IMG/VR virus record: IMGVR_UViG_3300035665_000001
Coordinates: 124,001-188,000 of that record
DNA length: 64,000 nt
Strand: one strand, 5' to 3'
In this document: piece by piece, positions 1 through 8,256 of the stretch
Numbering within the stretch: the first letter of the stretch is position 1
Layout of the letters: every line of letters starts with the position of its first letter
Position numbers and translations under genes: made by a program
Notes under the pieces: model-generated
The model's database searches: none
What the model saw: the letters and a program-made list of their open reading frames with translations, nothing else
Told to the model about the DNA's origin: nothing

Positions 1-744
1 ACAAAATACACATACAGTATTGTTGCCGGTAAAGTAACTAGACAACCTGCATATACATTCACAGCACTTGAAGATTTATTTGATAGATTGAGCACAATTA
101 GTAACATTGATACAATTAATGGTATTGCTTCTAGAACACTTCAAGGTGAATCTGAAAGACCATTGATTGATAAAGAAGATGCTTGGTTTAAAGTACAAAC
201 AAGCATTCAAGATATGGATGCGGAACGTGTTTCATTAGAAGCAAAATTAAAAAGTGGTGATGCTTCTGGTAATCCACTTTCACCAACATTACAAAAAAAT
301 GTTGCTGCTCGTATTGCTGATTTAAAAGCTGGTAGTATTACAGTTACTAAACAGTTCTATAACCACTATACTCGTCAAACTATGTCTGTTGAAGAAGTGG
401 TTCAAACATCATACACTGTTTCTTTGGAAAAAAGAACTGATCTAGAACAAACAACACCATATTTAGCTGGTTTAAGAGGTATTTCTGCGGCTCCAACAAG
501 ACCAGCAGTTACTTTAGATCCTGCTAAAGATGCTGAAATTAGAAAAATTCTAGTTAGACAAAAAATTGGTGTTACCGTTGGTGATGACAAAGATATTATT
601 GCCGATTTGGCAAATGCTTTTAACGCTATTATCAAAAAAGTTGGTGGTCAAGCAGTAACACCTGTGGAAGAAGCACTTATCACTAAATATAGTGCACGTC
701 AAGCTCAAATTGCTACTATTTTAGCAACTGACTATAAAAAATAA
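1..744 (+). CDS. Hypothetical protein, 5'-truncated (possibly virion structural)
   Basis: Frame of ORF 88..744 is open back to base 1; Ala/Thr-rich; followed by a terminator. Confidence 0.6.
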   Translation, partial: TKYTYSIVAGKVTRQPAYTFTALEDLFDRLSTISNIDTINGIASRTLQGESERPLIDKEDAWFKVQTSIQDMDAERVSLEAKLKSGDASGNPLSPTLQKNVAARIADLKAGSITVTKQFYNHYTRQTMSVEEVVQTSYTVSLEKRTDLEQTTPYLAGLRGISAAPTRPAVTLDPAKDAEIRKILVRQKIGVTVGDDKDIIADLANAFNAIIKKVGGQAVTPVEEALITKYSARQAQIATILATDYKK

Positions 745-763
745 AATTTATAGTTAAAAAGTT

Positions 764-793
764 AAAAGGTGGGTTTTTACCCACCTTTTTTTT
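764..793 (+). terminator. Intrinsic terminator
   Basis: AAAAGGTGGGT-tttt-ACCCACCTTTTTTTT hairpin plus T-run. Confidence 0.75.
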
Positions 794-847
794 GCCAAAA
801 ATTTAGTATAATAATTTAAATTTTTTTAAATATATTGAGGTATTACC

Positions 848-1780
848 GTGGATTTACAAACCAACACTAAACACCGATTCATTAAAGATTTTTCTTTGCC
901 TATTCAGGTAATTCAAGAACCAATGTTTATGTATTATATTGATGAATTGGATAGTTATTATTCAACTATTAAAAAACTTCAATATTTGAAAGATGCAATA
1001 AATCTGTTAGGTAGTGAAGATAAAGTTTTTAGTGAATTCAGTAAAATTAAAGATAGTTTGATTGCTGCAGTTACCGAACAAAAAAAATACCAAGAATTAA
1101 GTGTTGATTCACTTGAACAATATACCGTGAAAAATGGTGTTACACAAAAAAATATTTATAGTTTGGAAAATTCGAATAAAGTTTTTATTTCTATCGATTT
1201 AAAACATGCAAATTTTAATGTTTTGAAAATGTATGATAGTAGTTTAGTTTTAGAATCTGAAAATTATGAAGATTTTGTTGGTACTATGACTGATGTGGAA
1301 TATTTTAAAAAATCAAAATATATTAGGCAGTTTATTTTTGGAAATTTGTTACCTAAGAAGCAGCAAAAGTTACAGCATTGGGTTATAGATTCTATAGTTC
1401 AAGTTTTACTTTCATCGGGATTAAAATTACCAGAATTTAATTCTGCTTCAGCTGATGAAATTGTGATACACGTGGATAAAAATCGTGTTGATGATGTTTT
1501 CAATCATATAAAAAATGAATTAAAGACGAATGTAAAAACCTGTGGTTTCTATGAGTGGTTGAAAATAGAAATGTTTGTATTAAAGTCAATTGGTGGTAAA
1601 AGTTATTTTGTAAAAGAAAATATGTTAGATGGTTCGATAGAGTTTAAAGCAATACCATCATTTATCTTCATGCAAGTCTACAAAAAATATGTTGGTAACC
1701 CTGTAGAATATTTTGATAGAATATTTTTTCATGAGGGTTATCTGGCTGAATTTAAACAACCTGTATTTAGTGAGGGGTAA
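848..1780 (+). CDS. Hypothetical protein with DNA-polymerase-palm-like motifs
   Basis: FISIDLKHANF, KSKYIRQFIFG and SADEIVIHV are spaced like polymerase motifs A/B/C; GAGG RBS; TATAAT upstream. Confidence 0.4.
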   Translation: MDLQTNTKHRFIKDFSLPIQVIQEPMFMYYIDELDSYYSTIKKLQYLKDAINLLGSEDKVFSEFSKIKDSLIAAVTEQKKYQELSVDSLEQYTVKNGVTQKNIYSLENSNKVFISIDLKHANFNVLKMYDSSLVLESENYEDFVGTMTDVEYFKKSKYIRQFIFGNLLPKKQQKLQHWVIDSIVQVLLSSGLKLPEFNSASADEIVIHVDKNRVDDVFNHIKNELKTNVKTCGFYEWLKIEMFVLKSIGGKSYFVKENMLDGSIEFKAIPSFIFMQVYKKYVGNPVEYFDRIFFHEGYLAEFKQPVFSEG

Positions 1781-1783
1781 AGA

Positions 1784-2032
1784 ATGTTTGTAGGTGGGAG
1801 TTTTTTTAATATAGAAAATAAATTTTGGGAATTTCAAGTTGAACGATATTCTGAATGGGAAACATATTTTAATTTTCAAATTTGTTTTAATCGCAAATGC
1901 GATCATGCCGGTTTAAGATGTAATGCAGAAATTTGTGGTTATTGGGTCGATTTACAGATTTACGATTGTCGACACTGGGATTATGACCACGATAAATGGT
2001 TCGAATATACATCTGAGGTTGATGGTGATTGA
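1784..2032 (+). CDS. Hypothetical protein
   Basis: 82-aa ORF directly after the previous gene, with GAGGGG RBS. Confidence 0.6.
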   Translation: MFVGGSFFNIENKFWEFQVERYSEWETYFNFQICFNRKCDHAGLRCNAEICGYWVDLQIYDCRHWDYDHDKWFEYTSEVDGD

Positions 2033-2066
2033 TAAGTTATTCCCCACTCTAAGGTGGGGATTTTTT

Positions 2067-2570
2067 TCATTGAATTCTTCTTATTAATTTTTTAAATTTC
2101 CAGGCTGGTGTAGTTTCAGTTTGAATAAAATTCTGTTCTTCTATTAGTTGGAAATCATCATATTTTATTGGTGTTAAAAAGGTATCTGCCTCACCCTCAA
2201 AATCTACTTCACTGACATACATCGTATCTACTAAATTCATAAAATAATTGTAGATCTGAGCACCACCAATAATAAACAATTCGGTTTCATGTTTTTCTTT
2301 TGCAAATTTAATTGCTTCTGAAATATCTGTAAATACGTGCAAATGGTCAATACTACTATCACTATAAAATCCTTGTTTAGAAACAACTAATGAAACTCGA
2401 TTTGGTAGTGGTTTACCAATACTTTCAAAAGTTTTTCTTCCCATCAAAATATGGTGTCCTGTTGTTAATTCTTTGAATATTTTTAAATCCTCTGAAATTC
2501 GCCACAATAGTTGGTTTTTGAAGCCTAACTCATAGTTATTACCATGTGCAACAATCATCGAAATTTTCAT
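2067..2570 (-). CDS. folA: Dihydrofolate reductase
   Basis: [46 protein letters not shown] motifs; ATGA overlap with thyA. Confidence 0.97.
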
Positions 2571-4240
2571 ACTGCCATTTCTCCTTCAATTTTATCATGA
2601 CACTGATAGTTTAATAATTCGAAGTCATTCATAGTAAAATCATTAATATTTTTGGTGTTTGAATTTAGTTTCATTGTGGGTAGTGGAAAGGGAGTTCTAC
2701 TTAATTGTAGTTTACATTGCTCGAAATGATTTTTATAAATATGAGCATCTCCACTGGTATGAATAAATTCTCCTGGAACTAAGTTGCAAACTTGTGCGAT
2801 CATCATCGTAAGGAGTGCATATGATGCAATGTTAAAACCCAACCCTAAAAAACTGTCCACTGATCGTTGGTATAGTTGACAACTTAATTTTCCGTTCACA
2901 ACATAAAATTGAAATAAGGTATGACATGGTGGTAGTGCCATACCATCCAAATCACTTACATTCCACGCACTTAAAATTATTCTCCGACTATCTGGGTTAG
3001 TTTTAATGGTGTTAACAATTTCTGATAATTGGTCAATAATAATTTGTTTTCTAAATGCGTGATTTGGTGATGCACGAACTGTATAAAACTTACAATCTAT
3101 ATGAAATTCTTGTTTACCATCAATACAGGCTTTTATTAAATCTTTATTGAATTTTTTATTTGGAAATTTATTATTGAGATCATTAAATGATAAATATTCA
3201 AAACGCACACCATCTGAAAATTCAACGACCGTCTTTGTATTAAAATCGATTTCGTGAGCACTATAAAATTTATTCACCTTTGATGGTAGAAATATACATG
3301 TGTCCTTTGAATATTTGTTAGAGTTATAGTATTCCCTGTCAAGACACCAATCATTTATATTATCTTTTGTGCCAATTGACCATTCGTAAAAAAATGGTAA
3401 TAATTCTAAATCATATAAAAACTGTTTAAAGTCAAACCATCGAGAATCGACAAATATTCCTTTACCACCATATAGATGGTAGGATACATTATTAACATCG
3501 TAACACCGTTGTATCATGTTGTACCACATAGTTTGTGCTTTTGCATAATACGAAATATTCTTATCTTTTTTTATTGTAGAATAAAATTTACCAAAGTATA
3601 TTTGCTGACCAAATGTATTATTTCTGAGATTATGTTTACTTGCTATTTCCTTATGTCCAGTCAATATGGATTGTATTTCATAAGAACTATTTTTTGATTT
3701 ATCCAACTTTTTCAAAACCTTATATTCTGTACCATATTTGTTAGTCATAATACGACCAATAAATTCATCATTTGGAACTGGTTGATGATTATCAATGGAT
3801 GGTATTGGTATGGATTCTATGAATTTTTTTTCTTCCATTTCTATTAAAGTTGTAGAGTTTAACGCCCCTGTTTTTCTCCAACCAGAACCATATACATTTC
3901 CGAGCAATTTCATAGTATCACTATTGGTGTATCCCAATTTTTTACCTTGATTATCTGCGTTTGCAGTCCATATAGTTTTTTTACCAATGAGATTTTCTCT
4001 ACTATCCCCATAGTGTATTTCTGCTAATCTTCTTTCATCGGTACTACCTTCAATAAACCATAATAATTCGGAAATAATAGCTTTTAAATATGTTTTTTTT
4101 GTAGTGATTAATGGAAACCCTTGTGATAAATCGAATCGCATTTGATAACCAAAAATCGATTTTGTTCCAACGCCAGTTCTATCCGTTTTTTCATCACCAT
4201 CATCAATTATTTTTCTTAATAAGTCCAAATATTGTTGCAT
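2567..4240 (-). CDS. thyA: Thymidylate synthase with an in-frame HNH-type nuclease insertion of about 270 aa
   Basis: [56 protein letters not shown] motifs; insertion lies between YGSGWR and IDQL. Confidence 0.95.
3040..3874 (-). mobile_element. HNH/His-Me-finger homing-endonuclease-like domain inserted in frame in thyA
   Basis: [24 protein letters not shown]...YSKDTCIF motifs typical of phage HNH-like nucleases. Confidence 0.75.
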
Positions 4241-4304
4241 AATATCCTATTCCTTTGTAGTTTAGATGATAATATTATACAATTATTTTAAAATTTTGTT
4301 TTTT

Positions 4305-5585
4305 CTATGTTTTCTTTAAAAATTTATATCTTACTAACATTGGCACATAACTTGAAAAATTATGTCTTACTTGGTCGGATGTATCTTTTATTTTATTTAC
4401 ACTACTGTTATAATTTACAATGATCGCTTTTGCAAATTTAGTATCTTTTATTTTTTCCCATGATTCTTTATTTCTTTTTATCCATATTGCCATTATAGTA
4501 ACCACAGCAGCAATACCTATATTTGTGCTTATATCAAATGATGTTACTGAGTTAACCCCTTTATGACCTGCAAGTAACCATAATAAATTTTCAAACCCTG
4601 TATCATTATTTTTATCATCAGCAGAAAGAAACCAGTCAGCTACGTTAAATTTACCTGCAATTGCATCTACAGCCTGTTCTAAATTGTAATCATATACTAA
4701 ATCACCTTTGAAAACCATAGTTTGCCATGTTTGCCATGCAACCCATGCCATCCCACAACCAATCGCGGTTCTTAATGCTAATCCAGCAGATGTTTTTAAA
4801 AATCCTTTAGATGCTACCGTCAATTTTAAAATTCTTATATCGTTAATAGCTTCATTTTTTTTACCCTGATAGTCATTTTCTATAATTTCTTTTATTTTTG
4901 GGTTGACTAGATCGGGTTTCATCATCATTTTGTCCAAATAATCTTGACCATATTTCTGTAGAAAGTTTTTTAGTGCTACTACTGGTGTTGTTCCCGCAAA
5001 ACTTTCACATACTCCTTTGGATAGAATTTCGTGTAATTTTTTATAAACTACAAAACCATCAATTAATCTTTTTAAAAACCAATTACCTGTAGATTTTACT
5101 AAACCTATGAAATCTTTATTTTTTATCATTAACCATACAGCTTTAAAATCTACATCACTTAAAGATAAACCTTTAATAAAATTAAATAATGCCTTTCCAA
5201 AAACACCAACTGATTTTATAAATGAGATGATGATTTTTTTTACATCACTTATTGTGTTTTGAACAACTGTATTTTTCTGTACTGGTTGACCAAATCGTTC
5301 CATCATAATCGTATTTTCTAAGTTATCTATCAATTCGCTTTTTACTGATTCGGTTAGGGTTTTATCTTTTTTCAATCTGTTAATAACTAACTGATTTTCA
5401 AGTAAATGTATATCAACTATAGATTTTTTATCATTTAAAATTGATGTACCAAATCTATTCACTAGAATTTCTATTGCATTTATAGTTTCTAATATTTTGT
5501 TATACTCGCCGTTGCTAATAGTTTGGTTTGCAACGTCTTTAGGTGGTATTGTGAGTAATGTTAATTGTAGGTCAGTTATATTCAT
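4305..5585 (-). CDS. Putative virion internal protein with hydrophobic helices
   Basis: Late-promoter motif at 5617-5623; LTE/LLE motifs; hydrophobic C-terminal segments; start probably at MNITDL. Confidence 0.45.
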   Translation of the reverse strand: MNITDLQLTLLTIPPKDVANQTISNGEYNKILETINAIEILVNRFGTSILNDKKSIVDIHLLENQLVINRLKKDKTLTESVKSELIDNLENTIMMERFGQPVQKNTVVQNTISDVKKIIISFIKSVGVFGKALFNFIKGLSLSDVDFKAVWLMIKNKDFIGLVKSTGNWFLKRLIDGFVVYKKLHEILSKGVCESFAGTTPVVALKNFLQKYGQDYLDKMMMKPDLVNPKIKEIIENDYQGKKNEAINDIRILKLTVASKGFLKTSAGLALRTAIGCGMAWVAWQTWQTMVFKGDLVYDYNLEQAVDAIAGKFNVADWFLSADDKNNDTGFENLLWLLAGHKGVNSVTSFDISTNIGIAAVVTIMAIWIKRNKESWEKIKDTKFAKAIIVNYNSSVNKIKDTSDQVRHNFSSYVPMLVRYKFLKKT

Positions 5586-5684
5586 TTTCAATCTCAGCAA
5601 GGGGTATGATTACAAATATTTATTGTGCACATTGATAAATTATTGTATAATAGATAAAAAATAATTGAAATAGGAATTTAGTTT

Positions 5685-6005
5685 ATGACTAAAAAATTCA
5701 ACAAGCAACGAACTGATTTATTGCAAACTGTAGACGATTTTGAAAGAGTTATGGAGGATTATTTTGGTATGCCTCCATTTAAATTGGAACTGTTTAAACT
5801 CGACAGAATAACCTATTGGGAATATGAAGATGTTGAAAATTCATTAACTTTACATTTTCGTGATATTTTTGATTTGGATGAATTGGTATCTGGGTTAATG
5901 AGTACACCAGATAGATTATTTATGTTTGAATTTGAAGAATACAAACACGTTGATAGAGAAAATTTAACATTAACTATAATTGGTCGAATGGGTGGATTAA
6001 AATAA
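5685..6005 (+). CDS. Hypothetical protein
   Basis: AGGA RBS; TGTATAAT upstream; stop/start coupled to the ligase fragment. Confidence 0.7.
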   Translation: MTKKFNKQRTDLLQTVDDFERVMEDYFGMPPFKLELFKLDRITYWEYEDVENSLTLHFRDIFDLDELVSGLMSTPDRLFMFEFEEYKHVDRENLTLTIIGRMGGLK

Positions 6006-6811
6006 TGAAACTGAATGCGTTATATGAAAAAATTAATAGTATGGTTTCACTAGAAATATTTCAGTTTGGTGATACACAAAAGATATTGGAACAGGAATTC
6101 GTATCCGAATTCCTATATCTCAATAATATGGTAAATGATGTATTCAAAAATGAAACAACTGAAGCTAAATTTAACATTTTGCGAATTTTTGATGTTTATT
6201 ATCGTAGTGGTGTTCCACTAATAAGCGACAATCATTATGATGGTATGTACAAAATTTATGTAGATTCGATCAAAGAACCCGTTTCACCTATTATGTTTGA
6301 ACCCACAATTAATGCATGGGAAAAAGTTAACCATGATATACCTATGGGATCACTTGATAAACAAACAACGATTGATGAGATTGAAAAATGGTGTATGAAA
6401 AAAGGTATAGCTGGTTTACCATCGGTAGTATCGGAGAAACTAGATGGCATTTCGGCAGAACTTATTTTTAAAAATGGTAAATTCACTCAAGCTATTACCA
6501 GAGGTGATGGTAAAAAAGGTGATGATATTACTGAAAATGCTAAGTATTTTGATGGGGTAGTTAAGGAATTACAGGAACCCTGGGATTGTTCTATACGAGG
6601 TGAAGTAATGATAACTAAAGATAATTTAATATCTATCAATACTATTTTAATGTCTAATGGAAAAGATCCTTTAAAAAATACCAGAAACGGTGTTGCTGGA
6701 TTAGCAACAAAATTCAAAGATAGAAACTTAGAAATTCTATCTTTGATTTCATTTTTAGCTTATGATATTCAAGTATTTGCGGTACATGATACCGGTGAAA
6801 ATGTTGTATAA
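6005..6811 (+). CDS. ligA: NAD-dependent DNA ligase, N-terminal (partial adenylation domain) fragment only
   Basis: YYRSG.P.ISD..YD, H..PMGSLDK, EKLDG, TRGDG..G.DIT, IRGEV, NTRN..AG, F.AYD; ends before motif IV and the OB/Zn/HhH domains. Confidence 0.85.
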   Translation: MKLNALYEKINSMVSLEIFQFGDTQKILEQEFVSEFLYLNNMVNDVFKNETTEAKFNILRIFDVYYRSGVPLISDNHYDGMYKIYVDSIKEPVSPIMFEPTINAWEKVNHDIPMGSLDKQTTIDEIEKWCMKKGIAGLPSVVSEKLDGISAELIFKNGKFTQAITRGDGKKGDDITENAKYFDGVVKELQEPWDCSIRGEVMITKDNLISINTILMSNGKDPLKNTRNGVAGLATKFKDRNLEILSLISFLAYDIQVFAVHDTGENVV

Positions 6812-6819
6812 TTATTATT

Positions 6820-7263
6820 TTACGGTTTAAACCATTCTTGGATTGGGTTGTAATGAGTACCTTCCTCACTAATCCAAGTTTGTTCACTTACTAATCTAAT
6901 TGATATTTCCTCAACGTCCCCATACTCAACATATTTAACCTTTGTGGTTATCACTACTTCGTGTGCTTTATCACCTGTTCCTGCCGTACAAATAACCTCT
7001 AATAATTCAGCTCTTGGTTCGTATTTTTTGATTACGTTAGTTATCTCTGTCTGTGCGATGTTTCTAGTTCGTTGAATATTTGGTTCGTATATTAATAGGT
7101 GTAGATTTGTTCCATAGTCTGGATCATATACCCTAGAACCTTTATGGGTGTTTATCAAATTTTGAATTGATTGTTTGATAACCTCCTTATCATATATAAC
7201 AAAACCATCCTCACTTGAATTAATAGAAGGTGATAGTTTAAACAAACCTAAATATTTTGACAT
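6820..7263 (-). CDS. Baseplate wedge subunit, T4 gp25-like
   Basis: IKQSI.NL..T.KG.RV..P.YG..L..L.YEP and YEPR motifs. Confidence 0.9.
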   Translation of the reverse strand: MSKYLGLFKLSPSINSSEDGFVIYDKEVIKQSIQNLINTHKGSRVYDPDYGTNLHLLIYEPNIQRTRNIAQTEITNVIKKYEPRAELLEVICTAGTGDKAHEVVITTKVKYVEYGDVEEISIRLVSEQTWISEEGTHYNPIQEWFKP

Positions 7264-7265
7264 AA

Positions 7266-7643
7266 TTAAAATCCTAAAGTTTTTTTAAAAAAGTTAAAAT
7301 CCGGTATTTTTAGTTCTCTACCTTTGTAAAATTCAATAAATGGATCCTGTATTTCATTAAATAATGCAATTATCCACCAATATTTTGCGTTTCCATAAAC
7401 ATCATAGGCTATGGCATCTGGTCTGTTTACAAATTTTTCCTGATTTATTATAAAAGTGGTAGAATCTATTTTAACATTGTTGAAATTTAATCTCCAATCA
7501 TATGGTAAATCTTTGTTGCCCGGTTTCATATAAACGAATCTATTGAAATTTGTCCCAGTTGCACTTGAATCCTGTTTTAAAAAATAATCTCGTTTATGTA
7601 CCACCGCTCTTGATAAAGCATCTGTTTCATTTCTTATAGCCAT
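7266..7643 (-). CDS. Baseplate wedge protein, T4 gp53-like (LysM-like)
   Basis: RPDAIAYDVYGNAKYWWIIALFN..DP...G..LKIP; adjacent to the gp25-like gene. Confidence 0.8.
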   Translation of the reverse strand: MAIRNETDALSRAVVHKRDYFLKQDSSATGTNFNRFVYMKPGNKDLPYDWRLNFNNVKIDSTTFIINQEKFVNRPDAIAYDVYGNAKYWWIIALFNEIQDPFIEFYKGRELKIPDFNFFKKTLGF

Positions 7644-7663
7644 TCATAACTCCTTTTTTAAGT

Positions 7664-7697
7664 TATTTATCGTCGCTCTGCCGAAAAACTCCAGGTA
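7664..7697 (-). mobile_element. Degenerate copy of the IS200/IS605-like scar fused to a late promoter
   Basis: Minus strand reads GGAGTTTTTCGGCAGAGCGACG-ATAAATA, matching the copies at 31985 and 46234. Confidence 0.55.
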
Positions 7698-7842
7698 ATA
7701 TTTAACGATAATTCTCATAAAAAAAATTTAATATTCATCCGAATCCCTACTAGTCTTGGAGAAAAGCAGTGAACGCATGATGATTTGGGTTACTATTATT
7801 TCAATTATTTTTAGTATAATATATTTTCAAAAGATAATTTAC

Positions 7843-8256
7843 ATGAGGTTAACAGTGTATAGTCATTTTTACAAAAGAAAATACGTTGTTCGATATGAAT
7901 ATATTGGAACTGATTTAAATATCGATATAGTTGAAGTATTTGAATTGTTGACCTTTGATAAAGGTATTGTCAGTATGTCACTCTATATTGAACCACATAA
8001 ATGGAAAAATATTGCATTATTGTCAATAACTGAAAGTAATAAACAAACACTTTTAAATCATGGTGTTGAAATTTTAGAATCTAAATTTTTGTATGATGAT
8101 GAAATAGATGCTTTGATTCAATTGGCTTTTATTTGTTCTAAATATATGGTTGCACCCAGTAAAATTTTTGATTGTTCGAATGGTAGATTAACTACCATAG
8201 CTTATAAAAAATTGGTAAATACATTTTATGATGATTTCCCAGAGAAATATATTTAA
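7843..8256 (+). CDS. Hypothetical protein ending in FPEKYI
   Basis: Start probably 7843 or GTG 7855 (GAGG RBS; TAGTATAAT at about 7812). Confidence 0.6.
   Translation: MRLTVYSHFYKRKYVVRYEYIGTDLNIDIVEVFELLTFDKGIVSMSLYIEPHKWKNIALLSITESNKQTLLNHGVEILESKFLYDDEIDALIQLAFICSKYMVAPSKIFDCSNGRLTTIAYKKLVNTFYDDFPEKYI

Follow-up and report, generated by a model that had tools for sequence, protein, structure and literature searches.

A 64,000-nucleotide stretch of virus DNA, hereafter the window (bases 124001-188000 of the 306 kb IMG/VR record IMGVR_UViG_3300035665_000001, CheckV completeness 85%), belongs to a lake jumbo phage and contains a thymidylate synthase (TS) gene, thyA, interrupted in frame by a complete I-HmuI-like modular protein of the endonuclease type. 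The best explanation, and probably the correct one, is that the insert is a splicing-free homing element tolerated in ThyA as an extruded domain. An earlier reading of the letters alone, referred to here as the original prediction, had proposed a splicing-free selfish element fused in a surface loop. This proposal is favoured by the homology of the insert to free-standing proteins, by the lack of a HINT domain, intron or junction nucleophile, and by signs of gene conversion in related phages. Sequence and structure models together suggest that splicing is absent.

The insert lies between the YGxxWR and IDQ motifs of ThyA. In 75 complete insert-less relatives from IMG/VR, which are 284-299 aa long and whose N half is 61-68% identical to the window ThyA, about 8 residues separate YGxQWR from VDQI. 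The net insertion is thus about 270 aa, which bears out the predicted extra residues at 123-400. The G+C content of the insert is 26-28% vs 32-36% in the thyA flanks. The chance that an 834-nt (278-codon) stretch of about 27% GC stays open is p ~3e-11, by arithmetic from the base composition, and 16 stops interrupt another frame of this DNA.

Both ThyA halves appear to be intact, as predicted. Pfam recognized only thymidylate synthase in the full protein (PF00303, 341.6 bits), in two stretches interrupted between model positions 104 and 105, and the NCBIfam equivalog models agree (NF002497, 360 bits vs a cut-off of 327 bits). The catalytic residues, R21, R419/R420, C439-H440, R459-S460-D462, N470, H500 and Y502, are invariant in nine close insert-bearing relatives. 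In a full-length structure model the two parts build a complete TS fold (Z 23-24), with which all 264 residues of E. coli TS align (Z 23.6, 53% identity). The ThyA of the fusion therefore looks functional in the model and in sequence, and enzyme activity would be expected. It is the sole TS gene of the 306-kb record, in which neither a second thyA nor a thyX was found. The overlap of its stop codon with the ATG of the dihydrofolate reductase gene frd, as ATGA, fits a translationally coupled thyA-frd pair.

The loop that receives the insert is naturally variable, with about 8 residues in the lake relatives and 37 in Escherichia phage 121Q. The 121Q gene (L005 1501-2430) is insert-less, and the loop measures about 8-9 residues in E. 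coli-like enzymes and in those of the lake phages. The end of the 121Q loop (..SHGVVMKRTTDQ) resembles the C-terminal junction of inserts (..THVVRPKIYIDQ in phage UE-S1). The long loop could be the scar of an earlier insertion or just a variable loop.

The window derives from a lake-water metagenome assembly, and a metagenomic contig could carry such an arrangement as an assembly chimera or a sequencing artefact. However, both junctions are covered with 0 differences by contigs of three other lake metagenomes (2016-2024), a second IMG/VR contig is 100% identical across 6366 nt, and the same architecture occurs in finished genomes of cultured phages. The artefact explanation is already refuted and has practically no chance of being correct. 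The sequence of the record is also present in lake-water metagenome runs. A megablast search of window positions 1-8000 against cultured phages gave no match.

Anatomy and family of the insert

Pfam and NCBIfam hold no family that matches the insert of the window protein. In PHROGs, residues 154-411 match "HNH endonuclease" families (phrog_2081, E 7e-27). The insert was modelled by AlphaFold (AF2) from an alignment of 109 family members, with a predicted local distance difference test score (pLDDT) of 95.6 and a predicted template modelling score (pTM) of 0.89. The model consists of a series of domains between an outgoing and a return β-strand (Table 1). The strands, whose pairing is read from secondary structure, likely form a two-stranded stalk that lifts the module from the ThyA loop. 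In structure comparison the β-barrel that follows is similar to the N-domain of the ββα-Me enzyme Hpy99I, to Tudor domains and to VapX.

The C-terminal domain ties the insert to I-HmuI. Its residues 208-269 match I-HmuI by sequence profile (1u3e, E 1.4e-5), by hhalign (93.9% probability) and by structure (Z 7.2, root-mean-square deviation 1.9 Å), and PF22083, which covers this DNA-binding domain, was matched in 42 of the 109 relatives. I-HmuI is also the top overall match of the insert model in the PDB (Foldseek probability 0.90, with a low template modelling score).

Table 1. Features of the thyA locus, with positions in the window. "aa" numbers count from the start of the fusion protein and "insert residues" from the start of the insert.
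Feature	Positions	Strand	Basis or remark
thyA open reading frame with in-frame insertion	2567..4240	-	single 557-aa frame (open reading frame listing)
ThyA N-terminal part, aa 1-122, ends YGSGWR	3875..4240	-	Pfam PF00303 positions 1-104
Inserted module, 278 aa (aa 123-400), I-HmuI-like, homing-endonuclease-type	3041..3874	-	
Outgoing β-strand, aa 132-136	3833..3847	-	secondary structure of model
SH3/Tudor-like β-barrel, insert residues 33-90	3605..3778	-	structure match Z 4.9-7.0
Helical domain, insert residues 99-168	3371..3580	-	signature W..M..RCY ... Y.YGG.G..V...W..F..F..D
ββα (His-Me-finger-like) element, insert residues 176-205	3260..3349	-	model, family motif
I-HmuI-type C-terminal DNA-binding domain, insert residues 208-269	3068..3253	-	profile and structure
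Return β-strand, aa 394-398 (F-R-K-Q-I), back to ThyA at IDQ	3047..3061	-	
ThyA C-terminal part, aa 401-557 and stop, catalytic Cys439	2567..3040	-	Pfam positions 105-266
frd (dihydrofolate reductase)	2067..2570	-	ATG overlaps thyA stop

The putative nuclease site is the ββα element, where the family motif is L-D-K-D ... N. In insert numbering D179 is invariant (109/109), and K180 (105/109), D181 (105/109) and N201 (100/109) are nearly so. The model has a β-hairpin and helix at 176-205 that may be a ββα-metal fold, with a match to the PacI HNH structure (Z 4.6). In the SPO1 sequence of I-HmuI the corresponding residues are D74-H75 and N96, the metal ligands and general base, and the D-to-N spacing is 22 residues, the same as in the insert family. 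The correspondence of D-K-D to D-H-K is drawn from this equal spacing and from the predicted strand-strand-helix topology, not from a significant alignment. The family is therefore read as an I-HmuI-like derivative of the His-Me-finger nucleases with Lys for the catalytic His, and its nuclease activity and target site are predictions from sequence. The "HNH-like motifs" of the original prediction claim too much: PHROGs give the HNH label, but the catalytic His is replaced, by Lys in the family and by Arg in the window copy. The window copy reads D301-R302-E303 ... N323 and is the sole member of the 109 with Arg at the K180 position. Relatives deviate too: P0003 has D-T-E, and P0011 has D-I-F with His replacing the Asn.

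The arrangement is widespread. In a search of 1.84 billion representative proteins with a profile built from ten inserts, 65,070 matched at E<=1e-3, and 201 of them at E<=1e-30. When architecture was counted in the best 150 matches, the representatives being clusters at 50% identity, at least 56 clusters had the order ThyA-N, insert, ThyA-C, and 44 were free-standing proteins of 227-310 aa that consist of the module alone. The insert is homologous over its full length to these free-standing phage proteins. All fusions use one fixed insertion site. No other host domain came to light, since nine long insert-only proteins gave no informative Pfam domain. When only the insert was used as query, a word-indexed protein search added no new matches.

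The fusion is present in five cultured phages, which fall into three groups: Bacillus phage 015DV002 (Herelleviridae), E. coli phages UE-S1 and ph0011 (Asteriusvirus), and Klebsiella phages phiKp_21 (Alcyoneusvirus) and KP13-7. Their genes are deposited as "thymidylate synthase" or "hypothetical protein". Most Asteriusvirus genomes, 121Q included, are without the insert, as are 75 of 76 close IMG/VR relatives of similar ThyA identity. Free-standing homologues also adjoin thyA. In Bacillus phage C30-1 one immediately precedes an intact thyA (L004 1492-2214), and another lies between the 3' end of thyA and frd in a metagenomic contig (L011 174-1001). The protein of the latter contig, P0042, has an N-terminal linker and a C-terminal tail like those of inserted forms. 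The family tree shows clustering of free and inserted forms, but it requires at least three switches between them.

A profile scan of genome contigs with a narrow alignment gave five loci, and the two examined are further ThyA fusions on contigs of metagenome-assembled genomes: L097 2075-3697 (540 aa) and L098 1853-3418 (521 aa), the latter followed by an open reading frame resembling dihydrofolate reductase. The two bins are labelled Thaumarchaeota (archaea) and "Candidatus Scybalousia"; the contigs may be phage or prophage contigs within them.

Search for splicing elements

The module could be an atypical intein, removed after translation through a divergent or unrecognised splicing domain. 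It is in frame, at one conserved site of a nucleotide-metabolism enzyme and sporadically distributed, and inteins with HNH endonucleases and inteins of non-canonical classes exist (bioRxiv 10.1101/2025.01.02.630785). However, no intein or HINT family of Pfam or NCBIfam matched the window protein at E<=1, none matched the 109 relatives at E<=0.01, and no HINT fold was found among the structure matches of the insert model from 48,161 chains. The high-confidence model holds SH3-like, helical/ββα and I-HmuI-type domains only. Because the insert corresponds to a whole free-standing protein, a splicing domain, which takes about 130 residues, would not fit into it. The junctions do not look like splice sites either. 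In 49 fusions, those whose junctions could be located by a simple pattern, there is no conserved Cys, Ser or Thr and no His-Asn, and the sequence is freely variable both behind WR and ahead of DQ. The only constancy is on the ThyA side, R(x5)DQ, with an Arg six residues before DQ. The predicted lack of a C/S start block and of an HN-C/S/T end was thus confirmed well beyond the window, and an intein is very unlikely.

Removal could instead take place at the RNA level, by a group I or group II intron, or by translational bypass, the open frame being incidental. Phage thyA and td are classic sites of group I introns that carry endonuclease open reading frames (PMC3943268, PMC3984707). The covariance search for a group I intron that accompanied the original prediction was run: Rfam models gave no group I or group II match in window positions 2000-4800 at E<=10, and no intron match at E<=1 in the loci L001, L002, L003, L006 and L007 (four cultured-phage loci and the window's own). 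In every fusion, which amounts to at least 56 diverged clusters with inserts of about 165-295 residues, the open frame runs across both junctions. It leaves no in-frame stop or non-coding space, which a gene-60-type bypass and ribozyme cores need, in agreement with the earlier remark that there is no space for a ribozyme. Even the 40 codons at either end of the insert show a ratio of non-synonymous to synonymous substitution rates (dN/dS) of 0.26-0.32 between UE-S1 and phiKp_21; selection therefore acts on the translated product as far as the junctions themselves. Taken with these data, RNA-level removal or bypass is extremely unlikely.

A possible insert-less allele was seen as a joint 2926->4127 with 360 letters between, and was rejected as the ordinary thyA of another organism. 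The contig of that other thyA is much more abundant, is present in all four lake runs at a depth of 5-57, and matches two conserved motifs at window positions 2899-2926 and 4127-4159 (28-33 nt) with 3 mismatches each.

Mobility and persistence in thyA

Recent movement of the module was seen in the cultured coliphages. Codon comparison and blastn showed that codons 1-90 and 469-517 of the UE-S1 thyA are 95-98% identical to 121Q, whereas codons 91-438 are only about 50% identical to 121Q and 85-97% identical to Klebsiella phage phiKp_21. The replaced block comprises the 243-codon insert together with about 27 upstream and 80 downstream codons. The thyA of ph0011 is a similar mosaic with a different insert, resembling neither of the others, and Asteriusvirus was therefore invaded at least twice. 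Co-conversion of flanks is an established hallmark of homing (PMC2988022), and in sequence the UE-S1 and ph0011 mosaics are its signature. Between UE-S1 and phiKp_21 the dN/dS is 0.16 for the insert and 0.06 for the ThyA parts, a mark of purifying selection in frame. The synonymous rate (dS) is 0.54 in the insert vs 1.1-1.6 in ThyA; the lower value also points to mobility. The deep trees of insert and ThyA have few well-supported splits in common.

A different history is that a former homing element has been domesticated and is now kept in the lake-phage clade for some useful property of ThyA, for example tethering to DNA or to the replication complex, autoregulation, or attack on competing genomes. 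In the seven proteins of the window clade, insert and ThyA are conserved to nearly the same degree (mean pairwise identity 59% vs 62%), the insert is retained by all nine nearest insert relatives, and the D-K-D / N pattern has been lost in the window, P0003 and P0011 while the rest of the domain was kept. Against this stand three observations that are typical of selfish homing: 75 of 76 IMG/VR relatives of similar ThyA identity are insert-less, cultured phages gained the insert recently by gene conversion, and free-standing copies adjoin thyA. Domestication is therefore considered unlikely.

The near-equal conservation of insert and ThyA in the window clade is one of several observations that weigh against a tolerated homing element. 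Approximately unbiased (AU) tests on three named groups did not reject congruence of the insert and ThyA trees (p 0.34, 0.47, 0.15); the mobility claim hence rests on recent events only and no deep horizontal transfer is claimed. The sequence comparisons demonstrate horizontal movement for the cultured coliphages only, not for the window's phage. As to the nuclease, hhalign of the family profile against I-HmuI aligned the C-terminal domain only and not the nuclease region. The catalytic-His position is occupied by Lys in 105 of 109 members and the canonical H-N-H is absent. In the window copy two of the near-invariant residues are replaced, by Arg and Glu, and by its sequence this copy may be weakened or inactive catalytically. 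The full-length model is of moderate quality (pLDDT 68.8). Finally, the one metatranscriptome with this sequence yielded one identical 155-nt contig at 2658-2812, in the C half of thyA, and nothing across the junctions. That contig may reflect transcription of thyA in the lake or carry-over of DNA into the RNA library.

The splicing-free homing element would work as follows. A whole I-HmuI-like protein is inserted in frame at the tip of the variable ThyA surface loop, YGxQWR to xDQ. The module would be transcribed and translated within thyA and would require no promoter, ribosome-binding site, ribozyme or HINT domain of its own. Promoter-like sites at 1900-4400 number 19 vs 15.6 +/- 3.1 in shuffled sequence, and an internal promoter is unsupported. 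The module would stay in the mature protein on its two-stranded stalk while the ThyA parts fold normally. In a mixed infection the module, or an active relative, would recognize the uninterrupted thyA of an insert-less phage and nick or cut it, and recombinational repair would copy the insert and adjoining thyA sequence into the recipient. Since the insertion would destroy the recognition site, carriers would be protected. ThyA is an obligate dimer and would bring two modules together, which might matter for an enzyme family whose known members nick one strand. More tentatively, and with a little less than even confidence, the inserts might be regarded as a distinct and widespread class of in-frame "domain-insertion" homing endonucleases, marked by phenotypic neutrality through structural tolerance in a protein loop instead of splicing of RNA or protein, borrowed expression, possibly dimer-paired nickases able to cut both DNA strands, and a Lys-for-His active site.

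Neighbouring genes and relation to known systems

The thyA-frd pair adjoins a structural module, as baseplate genes lie nearby: gp25-like (6820-7263) and gp53-like (7266-7643). They follow, on the opposite strand, a 268-aa open reading frame at 6005-6811 (+) that matches only positions 3-164 of the 253-position adenylation domain of NAD-dependent DNA ligase. No ligase OB domain was found in the 306-kb record, and this frame represents either the remnant of a truncated ligase or a protein with a minimal adenylation domain. The neighbouring frames 4305-5600 (-), 88-744 (+) and 848-1780 (+), of 431, 218 and 310 aa, have no Pfam match. A strong terminator-like hairpin at 2041-2060 (8 pairs, 5 of them G-C, then T7) separates the 3' end of frd (2067) from the convergent genes of the + strand, which end at 2032. 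A weak Rfam match to "NsiR1" at 2020-2068 (20 bits, E 0.86) is that terminator.

Several known systems share part of the arrangement. Inteins with homing endonucleases are likewise in frame at one conserved site, co-translated, sporadic and spread by homing. The insert differs by having no HINT domain and no junction nucleophile, and it is predicted to remain in the mature enzyme. The group I introns of td and thyA, with I-TevI and I-BmoI, share the host gene and the homing into conserved thyA sequence. They are ribozymes with GIY-YIG enzymes and lie at another site, in the sequence that encodes the active site, whereas the covariance search found no ribozyme at the insert.

I-HmuI itself, from the intron of the SPO1 DNA polymerase gene (PDB 1U3E), has a homologous C-terminal DNA-binding domain and the same Asp...Asn spacing of 22. 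It is, however, intron-encoded, has His75 and has another N-terminal domain, while the insert family has Lys or Arg, the SH3-like barrel and the W..M..RCY helical domain. The free-standing HNH homing endonucleases MobE and MobA of phage T4 (PMC2790892, PMC3045599, PMC2988022) are comparable in another way. The nrdA of phage Aeh1 exists as genes-in-pieces, split by a mobE-type insertion, so that an essential enzyme tolerates an endonuclease gene unspliced, as two polypeptides (PMC3045599). Common to these systems and the ThyA fusions are the lack of a splicing element, targets in nucleotide metabolism, co-conversion of flanks and a host cost that is solved structurally. But MobE, MobA and the Aeh1 element have their own open reading frame, between genes or splitting the host gene, whereas here the polypeptide is continuous and the endonuclease is without its own start and stop.

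The nearest precedent is the ShiLan domain of a mycobacteriophage DNA methylase (Arsenault, Gosselin & Gogarten 2025, PMC11855218), an in-frame, read-through homing insertion in a phage enzyme, without detectable intein or intron features and proposed to stay as a loop. There the HNH is encoded out of frame, and what is translated in frame is a featureless hairpin, whereas in ThyA the endonuclease-like protein is the in-frame domain. The host methylase is dispensable; the host thyA is the phage's only TS gene. A hidden out-of-frame endonuclease of the ShiLan kind was ruled out, as the other frames of the insert hold open reading frames of at most 73 aa. An earlier description of the ThyA arrangement was not found in the searchable open-access literature, whose coverage is incomplete, and the insertion goes unmentioned in papers about jumbo phages and about UE-S1.

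The usual view is that homing endonuclease genes last inside essential genes only if shielded by a self-splicing intron or an intein, and are otherwise intergenic. A complete endonuclease protein kept within the host enzyme would be a third solution. Routine annotation misses it, as the fusions are deposited under plain or hypothetical names. The ββα element is possibly a new catalytic variant of the His-Me-finger nucleases, and the insertion site is flagged as a permissive site in thymidylate synthase for protein engineering. The arrangement recurs in dozens of diverged thyA lineages, among them cultured E. coli, Klebsiella and Bacillus phages, in which a selfish DNA element appears to survive unspliced within an essential enzyme.

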